DNA from: Paragordius varius
Lineage: Eukaryota > Animalia > Nematomorpha
Assembly (NCBI GenBank): GCA_964247055.1
Contig: OZ176060.1
Location: forward strand, 186,001 to 250,000
Length of the DNA: 64,000 nucleotides
Direction: 5' to 3'
The notes beneath the pieces are model-generated. The model saw nothing but the letters and a program-made list of their open reading frames with translations, did no database searches and had not been told where the DNA came from. Below are positions 2,495 to 30,690 of the stretch, piece by piece. The position numbers were made by a program, and so were the translations under genes. Position 1 is the first letter of the stretch. Each line of letters opens with the position of its first letter.

Positions 2495-5487
2495 TAATGT
2501 TCCCAGTACGGATATAAATTCTAGTATTCTAATTCCCAGTGATTGTTCGGTAAATAAAAATTATTTTAATTACTTTTCTAAAAATGAAGTCTCTTTATCT
2601 AATCGTTTTACTATTCTTGAGGAGAGTGTTGATGAGGAACCCACTTCATCGGTTACTCTACCTCCATCAAATAAAGTTTTAATAAATCCTCTGCTTTAAA
2701 TAAAAATACTTTTCCTTTCACTAATTTTAATAACCTTCTTGACTCCCACGACGAGAATTCCGACTGGGAGGACGTTTGTTCTTTAATAAGCTCTATTCAA
2801 AATGCATTATCTCCACCCTTGCTGATTATAGTAAGCCTAAATGTTTGGTTCATAAAGATATAAATATTCGTAGCATGTATAAGAAAAATAGAAAAAAAGC
2901 TATAAGATTGATCGTTGATGGCCCTCCATCCTCTTGTAAAATTAATAACGAAGATATAACAAATTATTTTAACAATACAATTGGCAAAAAATCTGAGCCT
3001 ATTAATTTTAATTATTCTAATAATTCTGTCCCTTTACTTGATTTTATTCCCTTTTCAGCATCTGAAGTTTCTGATAAATTAAGAAAAGTTTCTAACAGAT
3101 CCCCTGGTCCTGATGGTATTTCTTATACCAAATGATAGCAGGTGGATTTCAAAGGTATTCTTTTAACTAAATTTATGTTTAAGTCATAGAATGATTCCCA
3201 ATCATTGGAAGATAACTATGTCAATTTTAATTTCTAAGAAAGGGAGACCCTTACCTTGTTTCAAGTTGCAAGCCCCTTAAGCAATACTATTTATAAATTA
3301 TTTACTGTCCTTATTGCCAACCGTATTTCCAAGAATATTTTATAGAATAACTTATTCTCATCAGCTCAGAAAGGATTTATGCCTTTTGATGGCTGCTTTA
3401 AGCATAATTATATTGTAAATAAATCAATTTCCGATGCTAAACATAAAAAATTGATATTTTTGTAACTTTTATTGATATCAAGGCTGCGTTTGACTCGGTC
3501 CCTCACCAGCTGATTTTTGAATGTCTCCCTATTGGTATAGATGGTAATATTCAAGCTTTAATTAAGGATATTTACACAAATTCATGTACTCAGTTCTTTT
3601 CCGCCTCTGGGTTAACGCAACCCATTACTTTCTTGTCTGGCATTAAACAGGGGTGTCCAATTTCTGGCCTTCTTTTCAATTTGTCAATCGATTCTGTGTT
3701 GAGATCTATGGTGTTTAATGGTTACAATGTCCTCGCTTATGCTGATGACATTGTTTTATTGTCTGACTCTCCTGAACGTCATCAAGTTGGGCTCAACTTG
3801 CTAGAATGTCTTATTCAAGATATTGGTCTTTCGATCAAAGCTGAGAAGTGCAATATTGCTTCTTGTAGTCCTGTTTTTAAGATTGGTGAAGTTGTCATTC
3901 CCTCAATCGGTCAAGGTGAGTTTGTTAAATTTCATGGTAAGCCTGTAGGTCTCAATTTCATTAATCCCGTTCCTTCTACGGAAATTGTGGATAAAATACA
4001 TAGTTCTAGCCTCCTCCCCTGGCAAAAGCTAGACGCTATTAAAACTTTTTTCTATCCCACTATTTCTCACCAGTTGAGAAATAATGAGCTTAAAATGGTT
4101 ACAGGTGAATATCTAGATAAAAAGCTAACTAAAATTTTCAAATAAATTATAAATCTCTTAAGAGATGCTACTAACAATTATATTTTTGGCTCTTGTAATA
4201 AGGGCGCCTTAGGGATGCCCCTATTCCGAGATGACATTAATATATTCCGTATTGACTCCGCTTTCAAATTACTTAGCTAGATCCTTTTATAAGAGTTTCT
4301 GCTCTCGAGGAACTTAAGGTTTCGGCTAGCTTTCGTTTTAAGGTTCGATTAGATTCTATAACTCCCGATCAATTAAGCAAATATTTGTCTGGTTATGAGA
4401 ACCCTCTTGCCTCAAATCCAGCTAATAAATGCCAAAACATTTGGACAATAGCGAGAATTGCGTCTGAATCTCTCAAAATTTCCTGGTCTTTTGATGATTC
4501 TTTTCAGCCTATAGTAATTACAGAGTTCTCTAAAATCTCCCAAGACAATCGCTCAGCTGTTGTTTCTAACCTTCGATTTTATAAACGAAAGTTAAAGGAT
4601 ACTGAGCTAAACCATTTTGCTTTGCAGGGTTGGGTGATGGAGTGCGTTGCTGATGATAAGGTCAGTCACCACTTCCTATACAATAATAAGGATCTTCGCT
4701 TTAGAGACTGGAAACTCATCCATCGAGCCTGGATCAATCTCCTACCAACGAAAATGCGACTCTGGACGTCTGAACAAATGTGCCGTCGCTGCGGCAAATC
4801 GAAAGAAACCCAGGCACACGTTTTAAACCACTGCCTCAAAGATGATAATATAGTAACCAAAAGACTCAATGTCATAGTAGACCTGATTAAAGATAACCTC
4901 CCATCAAATTTCAAGGTCTTAAGTGAAAACCAAGCCATCGATTCGTCGAGACTACGCCCTGCCTGACCTCATTGTAACAAATGGCACTGATTGCTATATC
5001 ATTGATCCCACAGTACCGTTTGAAAACAGGCTAGAATCGTTCGAAACGGCTTTCAACAATAAAATAATTAATTATAGCTGTATGGCTCAACAATTACAGG
5101 AAACATACAGAAAACCCAAGTCATTCCAGTTGTTGTAGGGAGTCTCGGTTCCTGAAATTTAAAAAATGACATTCTATTCGACAAAATCAGATTCCGTTAC
5201 CGTACCCAACTTAAGAAATCAATAATTACAAGCATAATAAAATCTTCAGCCGACATGTACCACATGTTTATGAGCGGTCGAAATTCCATCATAGACAACA
5301 ACCCTACATCCTATGCATTATTGTAATATTTATATATATATTTCTTTTTTTTTATATTGATTTTATTATATATATATATATATATTAATATTTTCTCTTT
5401 CTTATCCCTTCTCCAAGCCCAATATTGTTGCGCAGCACTTTTCTTCATATATTCTAAATTGTATTTTTATATATATTAATAATTTAT
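2495..5487 (+). mobile_element. Utopia/NeSL-type RLE non-LTR retrotransposon copy 1 (5'-truncated, frameshifts and stops)
   Basis: ORF pieces contain RT motifs GIKQGCPISGLLFNL and LAYADDIVLL, WQKLDAIKTF, the CCHC knuckle CRRCGKSKETQAHVLNHC, and RLE motifs PDLIVTNGTDCYIIDPTVPFEN...NKIINY. Homologous to 53214-57092. Confidence 0.9.
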
Positions 5488-11152: not shown

Positions 11153-11215
11153 TCCTAGTGCGTTTTTACAGATGAAAACCTTTTTAAAATAAAAGCGCTA
11201 AAGCAAAAATCAAAA

Positions 11216-12353
11216 ATGCCATCTGTAATTGATAATGAAAAATTAACAACAAAATATCCGAACATTTTTCTAGCAATACATGAGAAGAATTTCGTACATG
11301 TCAGTGATTTGTATGGAAATATTTCTAAAAGCTTTGATATAAACTGCCATTTTGATAAATTTGTCCAAGATGGGCCATTTTTATGTAAAACATTAATACA
11401 TTGTAGATTATGGTCATTCACTAATAGAGCATCTATTTAATTTTATTGATGGAAGTGTAATTGAGTTAAGAAAAGACTCACTTGGATACCTATTAGACGC
11501 ATTTTTTTTCAAGAATAAACATTATCATCTTTCTATATTCCATTCTTCAGATCCTAGAAGGCACTTTATTGCTTATTATTGTTGTGGAACTAAAATATTG
11601 GTGTATTTTTATTATATTATAGGACTTTCCCGCACAAGATGGTGTGATTTGCCGATGGGATCCGGATTATATCTTTATAAGAGGCAAAGAAAATGATGAG
11701 ATTTATTGTTTAACTGATAAAAAAACAATTTCATTAGAAAGCAAAAGTCAAAAACTAATAAGTGGCTACAGTCATCTTTTTTGCTCAATATCAGATAATG
11801 AATCGGTTATCACAAATTTTACCAAATATAAACAAACAAGTCAAAAAACTAGTTTTCCCAATGATCAATGTCAGTTTTCGAAACACAATGATCATCTATT
11901 GTTGAAATATGAAGGAAATGTCTTTTCAATATATGATGCTTTAGAAGATAGGTGGTTTTTAAAATATAATTTGTTTTCTTTTAAAGTAAAATCTAGATGG
12001 AACTACATCATTTTTATGTAATTCATTATTTAAACATATATTTGATAGACAATCACATATAATATATCTTTATTTGCAATAGCATAAAAACGTACACTCT
12101 TGAAAAGGGATATTTTGATGGCATGTTTCTCCCCTACTCTCAAAATGTGGCATTTCTTTATTTTAATCCTAACTCGTTAGCTCCTTATCAATTCCAAACA
12201 TTAGTTTTTGATTTGAATCAAAAAGGAGAACTTATGCCTGAGAAAATAACTTTGCCTGTCATTAAGCCAAACGGACAAAATATGATAAACGCAAAGTATA
12301 TTTTGATGGAAAAATCGAAAGAAAGAAAATCATTTAACGAAGGAGATCTTTAA
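11216..12353 (+). CDS. Orphan four-exon gene, 342 aa (exons 11216-11384, 11407-11600, 11623-12017, 12083-12353); function unknown
   Basis: Removing GT-AG introns 11385-11406 (22 nt), 11601-11622 (22 nt) and 12018-12082 (65 nt) joins the three ORF-track pieces and the intervening sequence into one stop-free frame of 1029 nt, from aaaATG to TAA. Confidence 0.75.
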
Positions 12354-12428
12354 TCTTAATGTAACGATAGCATTCAAACATTCACCAAAAATAAAATATA
12401 ACAATAAATAATCATTATTAACCTTTTA

Positions 12429-14470: not shown

Positions 14471-17400
14471 TATAAATTTGTTTCAAAATACACAGAATAT
14501 AAACGTTTAAAATAATCAAAAAGAAGTTTATAATTAATAAAACTTCGATTCTATTTTTGACTTTTTTTAGGTTATAAATATTTTCCCATTAACACATTAA
14601 TTAAATAATCATAATAAACATTAATAGCAAAAATACCTAAACCTACAAAAATTATAGGTAATATTGGGTTGAGTAAAATTAGCAAAGTAAATGTATCTGC
14701 ATAATTTAGAATTCACCAGGAGAGCTTAGTTAGCTTGTTATTAGATATATTAGTCAATACAAACAGGCAAGAGAGAGCATAAGAACAAACCAAATTATGT
14801 TGACAGTCTACTATTTGTCAGAGTGTGAGACGCCTTTCGTCCTTGAACTCAGCAGTCACAAATGAACGTGGATTCTTAATAAATGGTATTCATATCTTGA
14901 GACAATTTAAAACCAAGTAGAGTGGGGGAAATGAATATTTTAAGCTTAGAGTCCATATTGGGCAACCGATTGTATAAAAATTCAGCCAGATAATCGCTCC
15001 TTATAATCCTCAAGACATTTTACCAAATCCAACATCTTAAATTTGCCTTTATATTGCGTATGGTGAAAAAGTGTTGCTTTTGACTGAAAAAGGGTATATA
15101 ATCTTTCGTGTAATCAACAATTTTTTTTACAAAAAAAACATTGATGTATCGACAAATTGTTTTCTCTCATTAATAAAAAATTAACATTAAAAATATTTGC
15201 ATTCACCACTGTATTCAAAAATAAATTATATTTTTGTTGATCAATTAATTATTTATATTTATAGAAATGATTGAACCTAGTATATATAAATATAACTTAT
15301 TTCAACTTCTAATTATCAAATAGAATACAATTATAAAAAATATTAGTTTTAAAATAAATTTATTATTTTTAAATATAGAAAAGTATTTATATTAATTTTT
15401 TATAAAATTATATAACCATAAAATAATTAAAAAATAAAAATTGAAATATAAAATGAAACGAGAGACGATTTCATTTCTTAACGGTTTTTTGATTTGTCTG
15501 ATTTTTATTTATTCGCAAAAATATTCAAATATTTTTGAAAAATGGGTACAATTAAATTTCATATTATGAAATATTTTAATAATTTTATTTTAAATTAATA
15601 TTTTTATATTAAATTTTTGATTAAAATGCATGGGAAAAGTATATGCCATCTTTTTTATGTTTAGTGTGTTATTAATATTAATCTTTTTTAACCAAATCTA
15701 ACAAAACTCTCTTTACATAGAAAAATATGTTAGAATGATGATTAACCAATAACAAAGCAGATGAATGAAAAATAAATTGTTTTCTTCTAGAACCCATTTA
15801 AAACAAATTTATGTTACTATTAATTCAAAAAATATTCTACAAAAATTAATGAATAATTGTTAAGTTTTTTTGAATCATTATTACACCATTTTCAAATATG
15901 ATAGAAATTTATAATACTTCACCATATAATTTAATTGAGAATTAAGCTAGAATTCACATTAAATAAAGTCGCAAAAAATCTAATTTTATTACATAGGCAT
16001 TAGAGCTTAATTTTTAAAAATAATGCTCCTTTTCGCTATATATATTTTATCATTTAAAGATACCCATTTTTAGACACATACGAAAAAATATTTGCTATAT
16101 ATAAACTGTTGTAATTTGTAAATATTTGGATATCAATAGCGTCATGTATTATTAAAACTTGTTTATAAATACTAGACAAAAAATTTTTCTGCCACTCGAG
16201 TTATTTGCAATTACTGATATACCATCATTTTAACAGTAAATTCCCTAACTAAAATTATGATTCCATCTAAGGAATTGAAATAATTCGTTTTTTGATTATG
16301 CGCCCTCTTTATCAATTTTTTTAAAAAATGTTTTTCTATAAAAATTTACAACAACCCATTTGTAATATATCATTCGAACTCTATACAATGCATCCTAATA
16401 TATTTTACATCGATAATATATTGGACATAGGTAGAACGCGCGAAGCGAGAGCGTTTTTCTTAAGTAATGGATGAAAATAGCTCAAACGTTGTCCAGATAT
16501 CAATGAATGTCCAAAAAAAGATAACTCAAAAAAGTTTTTTGATTTAAACACTTGATTGCTTTTATGTCATTTAAAACAGCCATTTTTTGTTTTTCTATAT
16601 TACCATCTCCATTTATTGATTTTCTTTAGGAGGCTTATAATTCCAAGACTAAAAACAAAGTGTAGGTATTTTTTTGTTAACAATTATGTAATAAATTAAC
16701 AGTTATAATTATGCATTTTAGTATCCGCTAAATTTTGATATTAATAATTTCTATTTAAAAAGCAAACCTTTCAAAGATTTTTTTAAATTTTTTTTACTGA
16801 TGTAACCCTAATAATTATATTAAAAATTGACTTTTAAATTAGTGTTTCCAAGAAAATTTTTGACTTAATTAAGGGTTAAAAAATTTTACCATATAACCCA
16901 AAAAAACTTTAACCTAGGGTTGATTTATATCACTTACTACTATTTGAGAGATACAGTTTTTCGCGCTCTTCTCAATGATATAAAATACATGGCTTGATAT
17001 CTAAAACTTTTAATTGGGAAAATTTCGAGTTTAATTTTAAATCGGGGCCAAAAATTATCGATAACTAATATAAAAAAATTTTAGCTCTTAGACCATTTTT
17101 TTCAGATATACTATTTATATATTTTTATGATATTAATTTTAAATTTACAAGAATGGCAGATAAAAAAAGATCAAATCATGCTAAATATCTTAAAAAAATA
17201 AATGAATATCATTGATAAATAATATATATAACACTCTGTGATTAAATTCGTATATTTGAAATTCATATTTAATTTTTTTGTGAATAAATTATATGTTTGT
17301 TGCAAGACTTACTTTATATAATTATATTTAACTAATCGGACAAGAATAATATTATAAACAGCCTTAATATGTGGAGCAAATAGTTTTGAAGAGAAAATTA

Positions 17401-18795: not shown

Positions 18796-19598
18796 TCATT
18801 TATGTATATTTTTAATATGCCTGGCAATACTGCTTTTTTCGGTATATTCCTTTTTACAAATCGGACATTCATGTTTAATTTTCCTGTGAACAGCTTGAAT
18901 ATGTGTTCCAAGATAGCCTTTTTTAGTATATTTCTTTTTACAAATCGGACATTTATGTTTAATTTTCTCATGAATTGACTTAATGTGCCTATCAAGATTG
19001 CCTTTGTTAGAAAATATTTTCGAACAAATTTTGCACGAGTATTTAACTTTTTCATGAACAGAACGAATATGTGTGACTAAAACATGTTTATCCTTATAAA
19101 TTTTATCACATTGAATACATCGATAATTATGGGCCAATTTTGAAAAGTTTAAAGATTTAATAGATTTTGTTTTATCATCAAATAGCATGTTAATATCATT
19201 CAAGCTTACGCCATTGGAATCAATATTTGAAGATACCGAGCTTATATCTTTTACATATTTTGGTGATTTTTTCAGAGAAAGATCTAAAGGTTCTGTCTGT
19301 TCTCCTACCAAATCAATAATTAGGCTATCTTTGATGGTTTCGGTATTTTCATCATTTAAGTTATTATTTTGTTGAGTATTTTCGCTTTTATGTTCCCTTA
19401 AATGACAAAGGTTATGGAAAGAAGCGTTCAGAATTCTCCGTAAATCATCGTTTGTAAAGTCTTCGTTTTCCAATAAATCAATAAATGATGTCGGTTTATA
19501 TGGATCATCAATATACGTTTCTTGTTGATTTTTGAGTTCTACTTTATAAAGTTTAGTATCGAGATCACACCAAAGTTTGTAAGTCGAATCGCCGAAAT
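18796..19598 (-). CDS. C2H2 zinc-finger protein (4 fingers, C-x2-C-x12-H-x4-H) with PLDLS motif; terminal exon, possibly intact
   Basis: ORF 18796-19473 stays open upstream to a ctaac...tttag acceptor at 19599-19600 that is conserved in the 39.86 kb paralogue. Fingers CIQC, CKIC, CPIC, CPIC; EPLDLSLKK at 19276-19290. Confidence 0.8.
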
Positions 19599-23772: not shown

Positions 23773-24483
23773 AAAATTAAACGATTTTAATGAATCTTAA
23801 AATTGGATATCCACAAAATTAATCATAAAGAGATTTAAATTTTAAGATAATAAAAATATTTTATATACGAGTTTAATAGGTCCAATATATGTTAATAAAA
23901 AAGTTTTTAAATATTAAAATTTTACTGACAAAACCAACATTTAAAGACAACATATAAAAAATATCCTATTTTTAAAATCTATCCTGCATATTTCTAATTG
24001 CAAATATATGATTGATTAAATACCAAATCACATCTATATATCATATTTTGCCATTTAAAACATTAAGAATAGAAATAATCATATTTGTAAAAGTACAGCG
24101 GTCTTTTGGAAAACTATTTTTTTACGTTTTGCCCGTATAAATTAAATTTTATATGAATAGTATTGTAGGATAAATTATATCTGGATATATGTCATTTTTA
24201 GTTTATATTTCTTGTTTAGTTCAGTATTATTATTGATAAATTTATGCTACTTTTTTATTGTTGGTCATTTTTTTTACACATTTTGTGTTGTAATGCGTAT
24301 GTTTATCCTTATAAAAAAACAACCTTTTTCGCCAAATTTACATTATTTTTTATCTTACAATTTCTATGTAAATATTTTATAGTTTTAGTTTCTTAGTGCT
24401 TTACGGTTATTAAAATTCGAGTTAAACCAAATCGGAAGGTTTAAGCTGATAGTTACAATAAAAAAGCGTGGCATGCCGATTAA

Positions 24484-25232
24484 TAGATCTTTCGCTGAAA
24501 AAATCACCAAAATCTATAAAAGATATTAACTCGGTATAAATGTTGATTCCAATGATATAAGCATGAATGATATTAATAAGCTATTTGATGATAACAATAA
24601 TAATGCAAAACCTTTTAAATCTTTTAAACTCTTCAAAATTGGATAATATTTATTGATGTATACAATGTGATAAGATATATATGTATAAAAGAGGCTTGTC
24701 CAAACATATTCGCTCCGTTCATGAACAAGTTAAATATCCGTGCAAAATTTGTTCAAAGTTGTTTTCTCAAAAAAGCCATATTGCTAGGCACATTAAATCG
24801 ATTCATGATAAAATTAAGCATGAATGTCCGATTTGTAAAAAAGAATTTACTCAAAAAGACAATCTTGCAACACATATCCATGCTGTTTATGAGCTAATTA
24901 AACATAAATGTCCGATTTGCAAAAAGGAATTTACTCAAAAATATCATGTTGCAAGACACATTCAATCTGTTCATGAACATGTTAAGTATCCTTGTCCGAT
25001 TTGTAATAAAGATTATTCTCGAAAAGGCTATCTCACCAAACATATTCAATCTGTTCATGTAAAAACTAAACATGATTATCCCATATGTAAATCCGAATTT
25101 TCTAATAAAACCAATCTTGCATCGAACATTCAATCTGTTCACGAGAAAATTTAACATCAATGCAAGATATGTGAAAAGGAATATACCGAAAAATACAATC
25201 TTACTAAGCATATTAAAAATGTACATAGTTGA
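24484..25232 (+). pseudogene. C2H2 zinc-finger pseudogene (7 fingers)
   Basis: DLSLKKS remnant at 24484, TGA immediately before the first finger, ORF 24681-25154 with five more fingers (one C>Y), then a frameshifted last finger ending at TGA 25230-25232. Confidence 0.8.
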
Positions 25233-27856: not shown

Positions 27857-30690
27857 GGCGTGCAGGCCAGACCCGGCCAGTCGCTGCACGGAGGTAGGGG
27901 CCAATAGGGATAAGGTAGGTTGTAGAATGTGTTTTACCAGTATAAATGTTGGTTCGTTAAAAAGTAAGTTATATGATTTAGTTGAAACTTTGAGGGTAAA
28001 AAGGTAAATTTTTTGTGCATTCAGAAAACCAGATACCGTGGAAATGATATTAAGACGTTAGAGGGTAATTATAAAATGTTTTATTCAGGTTCTATGGATG
28101 GTTAGAGTGGGGTCGCCATATAGTGCCTTTAAGATTCGTCAATCAAGTAATTGAGGTTAGACGTGTTGACAGTAGAATTATAAGTGTCGACCTATTGTCA
28201 AATAAGAAGGTTAAGCGTTTATGCCCCCCAGATAGGGTTAATTAAACCGGAGAAAGATAAATTTAATGATTTGTTAGACGCAGAAATGACTTCATTAACG
28301 AAAGACAGAGAAAATATATTTTGTGTTGATTTCAATGGGCGGACAAAATAGGAGAGGTTTTGAGCCTTGGCACGGCGGAAAAGGCCACGGGGTTATAAAT
28401 GAAGAAGGGGCTAGTTTATTAAGATTTGCCCAATCTTCTAACTTTGCTATAACAAATACTTTTTTTACGAAAAGGGATAGCCACTTAATTACCTACGAAA
28501 GTGGAAATAATAAGTCACAAATTGATTATATTCTAGTGCCACGAAAGTCTTTAAAGTTTGTTTTGGACTGCAAAGTGATACCCAACTTGCAGATTAGCAC
28601 ACAACACAATTTAATTATGTTTAAATATATGACAGATATACCAATAAATGCCAAAAAGCCTAAGCTTATAGCGCCGAAGGTAATTAAATGGGATTTTCTA
28701 AGAAACAGTAAAGAAAGATTCGTAGAAACTGTAGGCATACTAGACAGGAACAGTGATCCAGAAAGTGTTTGGTCTCAGGTGGCAAAAAAAATAAGAGAGG
28801 CGGGAGTTAAGGTGTGCGGAATAAAAGGTGGCAGAAACCAGGTTTATAGAGAGGCATGGCTGAAAGACGAGAAAATAATTCTGAAATCGCGAGAGAAAAA
28901 TCAAACTTTTAAAATGTGGAGGTTTACCCACCAAGCAGAAGACAAGGAAAAATATAAAAGGATTAATAAGGAACTTAAAAGGATTGTAAGATTGGTCAAA
29001 AAAGAAAAGACGGCATCATTATATGAAGAGTTAAACAGTAAGCAAGATCTAAACAAAGTTTTTAAAATTGCTCGACAAAGACACAGAAGAATGCTGGACT
29101 TGCCCCCTTACGCGACAGCTATTAAAGATAAAAAAGGCAAATTACTCGTTGAGGAAGCGAAAATATTGAAAAGGTGGAAAGAATATTTCCAGGACCTTGA
29201 ATTGGGCGTCAGTGAAACAAGTTTACCCGAAACACCAGAAATCTGCGCATATTGAAAGTATAACAAAAGAAGAAGTCCAGGCTAGTTTAGAAGAGATGTC
29301 AATAAATAAGGCTGCAGGTCCAGACGATATTAACATAAACTGTTGGAAAATATTGTCAGAGAAAGGTATTGAATTTTAGCGGATATTTTTAATAATGTAG
29401 TTACTACAGGTATGATACCAACCGAATGGAAGGAGAGTTTCACTGTTCCCATTTTCAAGGGTAAAGGAGATATTAATGATTGTAATAATTACAGAGGGAT
29501 AAGATTGATGTAGCATACAATGAAGTTATTTGAGAAAATACTAGAGAAAAGAATAAGAAAAATGGTTAGTATAGAGGGTAATCAATTTGGTTTTATTCCA
29601 GGAAAATCCACCATTGATCCAATTCACGCAGTAAGAAGGCTAATCGAGAAGCATATAGAAATGAAAAAGGAGTTGCATAGTATTTGTATTGATATTGAAA
29701 AGGCTGACAGAATACCTCGGAGCACAATATGGTGGAGCTTAAGACGGAAAAAGGTCCCTTAGAGTTACATAAAGATCTAAAACACACCACGGAATATCAG
29801 GTCCTATTAAAATAAACGAAGGGGTCTATCAGGGGTCTGCAATCAGCCCGTTATTATTTATAATATGCATGGACGAAATTTCAAAAGAAGTAGGGCAACA
29901 TGATGGCTGGTATTTTCTTTATGCAGACGACCTAATAGTGTTGTCCGACGAGTTGCATGAATTAAAAGAATCGGTGAGTAAATGGATTGATGTGTTACGA
30001 CGATGCGGATTAAAAGTTAACAAAAAGAAAACGGAACTGATAAATTTTGGCGGGAAAAAACGAGAAATAGAATTAGAAGAAGGGTGGGTATTAAAAGGTC
30101 AGGAAGAATGCAAATATTTAGGAGCAATATAAGCAGCTGATGGATCTTTAACACTTGATATTAATTTAAGAATTCGAAATAGTTGGGCAAATTACAAAAA
30201 GATCTCAAGTGTATTGTGCGACAAAAATATTGACCTAAAAGTAAAGGGTAAAATTTACAGTGCTGTTGTACAACCAACAATGATGTACAACTCACAGACA
30301 TGGGCAATAAAGAAATCAGAAGAGAGGCACTTTGAGGTTACTGAAATGAGAATGCTTAGATTGATGTGCGGTGTAACGAGGAATGACAAGGTGAAGAATG
30401 TCTACATAAGAGGAAGTACGGAAATCAAATCGGTAACGCAAAAGATGATGGTAAATCGTTTAAGATGGTTCGGACATGTTGAAAGAAGAGATAAAAATTA
30501 CATTGGTAAAAAGATTGATGATTATATTGTAAAAGGCAAGAGGGGAAAAGGGCGCCCTAAAACGCGATGGATAGATACAGTTAAGAGGGACATGGCAAAA
30601 CTGAACCTAAAACGCGAAGACGCCTTAGACAGGGTTCTATGGCGAAATAGTTTACGGATATGACCGCTCGAAAGAGTGATATCATATAAT
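27857..30690 (+). mobile_element. RTE-clade LINE (APE endonuclease + RT), near full length, disrupted
   Basis: APE motifs FAITNTFF, YESGNNKSQIDYIL, STQHNL. RT motifs KAAGPDDI, NQFGFIPGKSTID, LYADDL. RTE-type tail RLRWFGHVERR...RGKGRPKTRWIDTVKRDM...DRVLWR. Confidence 0.9.

Follow-up and report, generated by a model that had tools for sequence, protein, structure and literature searches.

A five-copy gene family of the horsehair worm Paragordius varius with two candidate introns of 21–28 nucleotides

The Paragordius varius genome analyzed here comprises 110.6 Mb in 44 contigs and has a GC content of approximately 25%. A 64-kb stretch of this genome (contig C11:186001–250000), which we refer to as the window, contains a candidate gene of four exons that extends over 1138 nt from ATG to stop (Table 1). 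When three GT–AG segments of 22, 22, and 65 nt are excised, the remaining exons (169, 194, 395, and 271 nt) form a 1029-nt frame that runs from ATG to TAA and, by frame arithmetic, contains 342 codons free of stops. The coordinates and sequences of the three segments are exactly those reported in the initial annotation of this locus, and our recomputation likewise agreed with its claim that removal of both 22-nt segments restores the reading frame. An in-frame TAG at 11156–11158 precedes the ATG by 58 nt. Removal of intron 2 fuses the peptide ...GTKIL to DFPAQDGVICRWDPDY. Near either 22-nt intron, we found no alternative GT/AG pair that restores the frame. The GC content is 0.23 in intron 1, compared with 0.28 in the flanking exons, and 0.14 in intron 2; overall, introns 1 and 2 (0.14–0.23) are GC-poorer than the exons (0.28–0.32). 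The AATAAA hexamers located downstream of the stop are possible poly(A) signals but constitute weak evidence for polyadenylation since AT-rich DNA contains many such hexamers.

Table 1 Candidate gene in the window and its four paralogues. Positions without a megabase value are those of the window.
Feature	Location	Strand	Description
Gene (window copy)	C11, 11216–12353	+	Intron 1, 22 nt; intron 2, 22 nt
Exon 1	11216–11384	+	169 nt; ATG at 11216; exon ends with T, phase 1
Intron 1	11385–11406	+	22 nt, GT...TAG, phase 1; TAT codon split T/AT; frame +1 on removal
Exon 2	11407–11600	+	194 nt; without a start codon of its own
Intron 2	11601–11622	+	22 nt, GT...TAG, phase 0
Exon 3 core	11623–11951	+	329 nt; motifs ICRWDPDY and QFSKH...IYD; kept in paralogues
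Ambiguous 66 nt	11952–12017	+	Tail of exon 3 or 5′ part of intron 3 (donor AG/GTGGTT at 11952)
Intron 3, minimal version	12018–12082	+	65 nt, GTAATT...AATAG, phase 2
Exon 4	12083–12353	+	271 nt; TAA at 12351–12353
Two AATAAA hexamers	12390–12408	+	37 and 50 nt past the stop; possible poly(A) signals
Paralogue L010	C7:9.20 Mb		Intron 1, 21 nt; intron 2, 22 nt
Paralogue L011	C2:14.82 Mb		Intron 1, 21 nt; intron 2, 22 nt
Paralogue L012	C1:10.44 Mb		Intron 1, 28 nt; intron 2, 25 nt
Paralogue L013	C11:0.375 Mb		Intron 1, 22 nt; intron 2, 23 nt

The expectation that ORF callers would miss a gene of this architecture was borne out. The caller splits the gene into three separate ORFs (11216–11440, 11644–12021, and 12123–12353), and the open frame of exon 2 goes unlisted because this exon contains no ATG, GTG, or TTG. 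The dinucleotides GT and AG are frequent, which raises the question of whether unrelated open frames in AT-rich DNA were joined by chance or whether assembly (homopolymer) errors mimic frame breaks. As a null test, we used dynamic programming to search for the longest open frame that can be built with up to three GT–AG introns of 18–100 nt, with no start codon required. Across 40 simulated 64-kb strands generated with an order-3 Markov model, the longest spliced open frame had a mean length of 610 nt and a maximum of 735 nt. The frame of 342 codons (1029 nt) is therefore not a product of chance. Applied to the real window, the search behaved as expected. A count made on 118 kb of GT..AG segments linking one open frame to another did not exceed that of decoy dinucleotides, a result that would favor chance joining but is uninformative at that size. 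However, the protein sequence of all four exons is conserved at four further loci, and a sequencing error would not recur at one codon in diverged copies. On the evidence of these paralogues, we regard both chance joining and assembly error as already refuted.

The paralogues were identified through six-frame searches of the whole genome in which exons 3, 4, and 1 served as separate queries. Each query returned the identical four extra loci and no other credible match; two weaker candidates, L008 and L009, were judged to be unrelated, and L009 resembles a multi-pass membrane protein. The four exons lie in unchanged order at all four paralogue loci, with protein identities of 24–55% when compared exon by exon (35–55% for the peptide encoded by exon 1; 32–51% for that encoded by exon 4, which has 16 invariant columns). 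The exon 2 motif IIDC...LDG.LLDAMYFKGKHY is common to the gene and its paralogues, and the exon peptides on either side of the tiny introns are conserved. Intron 1 is found in phase 1 in all five copies, where it splits one and the same codon (T/GT...AG/AT). Intron 2 occupies one shared codon position in phase 0, again in five of five copies. Across the family, intron 1 varies from 21 to 28 nt and intron 2 from 22 to 25 nt, and the length of every tiny intron equals the frame shift demanded by the exons of its own copy. In the window copy, L010, L011, and L012, the ATG and the first donor are exactly 169 nt apart. Both 22-nt segments, the 65-nt segment, and the eight micro-introns of the paralogues all begin with GT and end with TAG. 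Comparative support is drawn from paralogues of a single genome, and among these five copies the position and phase of the introns are shared and their length is free.

Two of the paralogues are closely related. L010 and L011 lie in an inter-chromosomal segmental duplication of more than 5 kb (approximately C7:9204300–9209500 and C2:14823400–14828500) that is 91–100% identical, introns included. The duplication spans the whole gene together with at least 2 kb of downstream sequence; the downstream part is the most similar (97–100%) and could represent a younger repeat. The duplication is evidently recent, and we therefore count L010 and L011 as one witness. Intron 1 of both copies (2373–2393 in L011; 2600–2620 in L010) is 21 nt in length, which is a multiple of three, and contains no in-frame stop. 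Consequently, the frame at this site is no proof of splicing in these two copies. If retained, the intron would add seven residues silently.

The initial annotation noted that homologues might expose the frame breaks as ordinary pseudogene indels; the gene would then be a decayed pseudogene with coincidental GT...AG ends. True frameshifts and stops are indeed present in the family. L013 contains an in-frame TAA and a 1-nt shift in exon 2 together with a 2-nt loss within ICRWDPDY, and L010 has lost 1 nt toward the end of exon 3. With two of its five members broken, the family may be decaying, and no homologue was found outside the family for comparison. However, these genuine lesions sit away from the intron sites and are not bounded by GT and AG, whereas the breaks attributed to introns fall at two identical codon positions in all copies and are bounded by GT and AG throughout. 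The lengths of these breaks differ by non-multiples of three, yet each fits the frame of its copy. Moreover, the exons of L010 and L011 differ by 14 synonymous and 23 non-synonymous changes, and the resulting dN/dS of 0.41 also speaks against decay. Recurrence at shared codons, GT/AG bounds, and copy-by-copy compensation of the frame therefore argue that the breaks are not pseudogene indels; examination of the four paralogues did not expose them as such, and we consider the pseudogene reading close to refuted. By coordinate arithmetic, L011 and L012 join into intact frames of 314 and 316 amino acids.

We estimate a probability of about 0.85 that the locus is a real gene with two genuine 22-nt introns; that splicing takes place is something we infer from genomic sequence. 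The gene would be protein-coding with four exons, and introns 1 and 2 would be U2-type GT–AG spliceosomal introns; the ordinary spliceosome would excise them, in a genome whose tubulin genes also contain introns shorter than 30 nt. The family would have kept both tiny introns at fixed positions during diversification, with their length drifting within 21–28 nt. A search for a conserved neighboring gene or mobile-element cassette alongside the family found none. An AT-rich repeat, probably a dispersed repeat or MITE, lies at 16170–17000 of the window, approximately 4 kb downstream of the gene, and is found in inverted orientation just upstream of L013 (L013:1367–2200).

The third intron allows two solutions. 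The 65-nt intron proposed by the initial annotation has GT–AG ends and restores the frame, but it is not the sole in-frame solution. A phase-2 GT at 11952 also works with the acceptor at 12082, generating an intron of 131 nt and a protein of 320 codons. The open stretch that leads into exon 4 (open frame of 96 amino acids) offers a single AG, the acceptor at 12082, whose position and phase 2 are common to all paralogues; in these, intron 3 measures 0.65–2.0 kb. Under the second solution, intron 3 would begin at a family-wide donor (AG/GTGGTT), the 66-nt tail of exon 3 would be intronic or confined to an alternative isoform, and both 22-nt introns would be unchanged. All five copies have a phase-2 GT at the homologous codon, and L011 (2933) and L012 (3061) have no other usable late donor. 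The protein lengths of the family would then be uniform (314, 316, and 320 amino acids by coordinate arithmetic). The tail itself has an intron-like GC content of 0.197, compared with 0.28–0.32 in the exons; conservation in the exon 3 alignment drops past ...EDR, and pLDDT is low from residue 110 on. On the other hand, the frame beyond 11952 stays open for 22 codons in the window copy and for 20 codons in L013, its closest paralogue, and both open stretches end in the right phase at an identical AT/GTAA. Non-coding DNA of this region would yield such a long open stretch with a probability of approximately 0.15–0.18 per copy. The donor at 12018 (AT/GTAATT) has a counterpart only in L013 (AT/GTAAAA), but the usual donor consensus of animals is matched more closely by GTAATT than by GTGGTT. 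We place the family-wide donor slightly below even odds and judge the two donors about equally probable, which would give an intron of 65 or 131 nt and a protein of 342 or 320 amino acids; the length of 342 amino acids is uncertain because the donor is ambiguous. Intron 3 would thus be long in the other copies and 65 or 131 nt in the window copy. Because introns 1 and 2 are tiny and intron 3 of the paralogues reaches 0.65–2.0 kb, the family pattern is one of tiny introns first and long introns last.

The initial annotation had proposed that the host splices tiny introns as a regime. Consistent with this idea, introns shorter than 30 nt are found in conserved genes. In a β-tubulin gene (C4:4964500–4968500, reverse strand), the invariant N-terminus MREIVHIQAGQCGNQIGAK is parted from FWEVISDEHGIDPTG by a frame-changing 25-nt GT–AG segment located after codon 19 (...NQIGAK/25 nt/FWEVISDEHG). 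The same gene has a 43-nt intron further on. In an α-tubulin gene (C3:3257000–3261000, reverse strand), an intron of 29 nt directly follows the ATG (M/29 nt/RECISIHVGQAG). The exon ends were recognized from the well-established N-terminal sequences of tubulins. Since these 25- and 29-nt introns are confirmed by homology, it follows that the genome splices introns shorter than 30 nt. Both tubulin genes also have introns of approximately 80–110 nt, and the actin genes have introns of approximately 100 nt only. All 11 micro-introns examined end in TAG, with GC contents of 9–23%, and eight of the 11 have an A located 7 nt from the 3′ end. This position is suggestive of a putative branch point, although the evidence is weak because the DNA is so AT-rich.

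Not every candidate withstood inspection. Two possible tiny introns in the window (24135–24160 and 24368–24388) as well as one of 22 nt at the tubulin locus on C6 were rejected because they join junk-like frames. A second copy of α-tubulin on C6 (L030:940–970, corresponding to C6:9692440–9692470) has an ATG followed by 27 nt that start with AT and end with TTTTAG, after which RECISIHIGQAG begins. These 27 nt could be an AT–AG intron, the copy could use another upstream start exon, or it could be dead.

The tiny introns had further been linked to a divergent U2 sequence and to a U2-targeting element in the same region. Our analysis did not support the first link, because canonical U2 genes exist in the genome: a search yielded 46 U2 matches, and the best of these (177.7 bits) carries the canonical GUAGUA box that pairs with the branch point. 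The 64-kb window contains no RNA gene, U2 included, at the level of Rfam. The co-occurrence with a U2-targeting element appears to be incidental. Most of the 46 matches are clustered, above all at C3:257000–528000 and also at C2:11950000–11990000, and their scores start at 177.7 bits and fall to values under the gathering score. This distribution fits arrays with many decayed or interrupted copies.

The gene had been described as an orphan. This description holds in that no relative was found outside the genome, but the gene is one of five paralogues and its exon 3 models as WD40-like β-propeller blades. Homology searches were made exon by exon, and the joined frame was used only for counts of stops and base composition. 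None of the exons had a Pfam match at E ≤ 1. Among PDB sequences, profiles of exons 3 and 4 yielded no significant match; two WD40-repeat proteins, SWD3 and the beta subunit of the guanine nucleotide-binding protein, were reached with E values of only 0.46–0.77. The exon 4 profile found no true relative among 1.84 billion representative proteins, the sole match being a repeat-rich bacterial adhesin with 28 Ig repeats that we judged to be spurious. No match to the exon 3 profile was obtained in a word-indexed collection in which only proteins of approximately 72–229 amino acids were eligible, so longer relatives of exon 3 could be missed. The ESM Atlas provided no usable lead, with scores up to 0.87 and low recognition. 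As judged by the profile searches with exons 3 and 4, the product of the gene is absent from protein databases.

Structural modeling was more informative for exon 3 than for exon 4, whose model was poor (pLDDT 47). AlphaFold, supplied with a four-row alignment of exon 3, produced an all-β model with 11 short strands (pLDDT 68, pTM 0.62). Among the top matches listed, Foldseek (best E value 2e-3, TMq 0.36–0.58) and VIA-align (Z up to 9.7) both returned almost exclusively β-propellers, mostly of the WD40 type. These structural matches include IFT-A subunits, Atg18, WDR5, and Nup82. In addition, the motifs ICRWD, SIYD, and VFDL resemble the ends of WD repeats. The product of 342 or 320 amino acids is most likely a divergent WD40-like β-propeller that would act as a protein-binding scaffold, with both fold and function predicted from a moderate-confidence model of the exon 3 fragment and with no match to a WD40 sequence profile. 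The predicted likeness to WD40 β-propellers such as IFT-A subunits, Atg18/PROPPIN, and WDR5 consists of the all-β architecture and putative four-stranded blades of the exon 3 model, together with the motifs resembling WD ends. Unlike these proteins, the product has no Pfam WD40 match and no significant match to a PDB sequence, and neither an orthologue nor a specific subfamily can be assigned.

Introns shorter than 30 nt were, to our knowledge, long thought to be absent from animals. Genes of parasitic flatworms have small introns at the 5′ end and long introns at the 3′ end, and these small introns peak above 30 nt. The family described here resembles flatworm genes in this polarity, with small introns first (introns 1 and 2, 21–28 nt) and large introns last (intron 3, up to 2 kb), but differs from them in that the small introns of all five copies measure 21–28 nt. 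A survey of 51 animal genomes identified introns shorter than 30 bp only in myxobolid myxozoans and in Dicyema japonicum, in which tiny length is the genome-wide median (22–27 bp) and the introns exhibit reduced splice-site motifs with A residues shortly before the AG (Hadjez et al. 2026, Mol Biol Evol msag244; PMC13644364). The tiny introns of P. varius share several features with those of myxobolids and D. japonicum, which measure 20–29 nt (PMC13644364): they have GT–AG ends, are very AT-rich, and lie between conserved exons. In myxobolids and D. japonicum, A residues a few bases before the AG are the probable branch point, and removal is by canonical U2-type machinery; the same may hold for P. 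varius. P. varius differs from those lineages in that genes with tiny introns at their 5′ end also contain introns of 65 nt to 2 kb. The genome papers on horsehair worms that were consulted do not mention introns; one of them reports a GC content of 26.9% and a BUSCO score of 71.6%.

These comparisons bear on how widely tiny introns are distributed among animals. We see an even chance that this ecdysozoan worm represents a third independent animal lineage with introns of 21–29 nt, in which such introns constitute a distinct class, located toward the 5′ ends of genes alongside kilobase introns, that is old and stable. If this is true, two positions would have stayed tiny (21–28 nt) down to approximately 30% protein identity as intron 3 ranged from 65 nt to 2 kb, and the pattern would point to length-limited, position-dependent pairing of splice sites. 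The five paralogues can be viewed as a natural experiment in which position and phase are fixed, length is held at 21–28 nt, and a neighboring intron is free to reach 2 kb. What is new is that tiny introns occur also in a gene family for which no homologue was found elsewhere. Such a gene would escape assembly by homology-guided and by standard ab initio gene finders alike, and if our reading is true, lineage-specific genes may be hidden in a form that is invisible to current annotation pipelines. Tiny-intron genes that are missed in this way may account in part for low completeness scores and for lineage-specific genes being overlooked in such genomes.

Elsewhere in the window, open frames of reverse transcriptase (RVT_1, zf-RVT) are located at 3633–4966 on the plus strand. 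A 310-amino-acid ORF without a Pfam match occupies 28323–29255, also on the plus strand, and C2H2 zinc-finger genes are found at 18796–19473 (minus strand) and 24681–25154 (plus strand).
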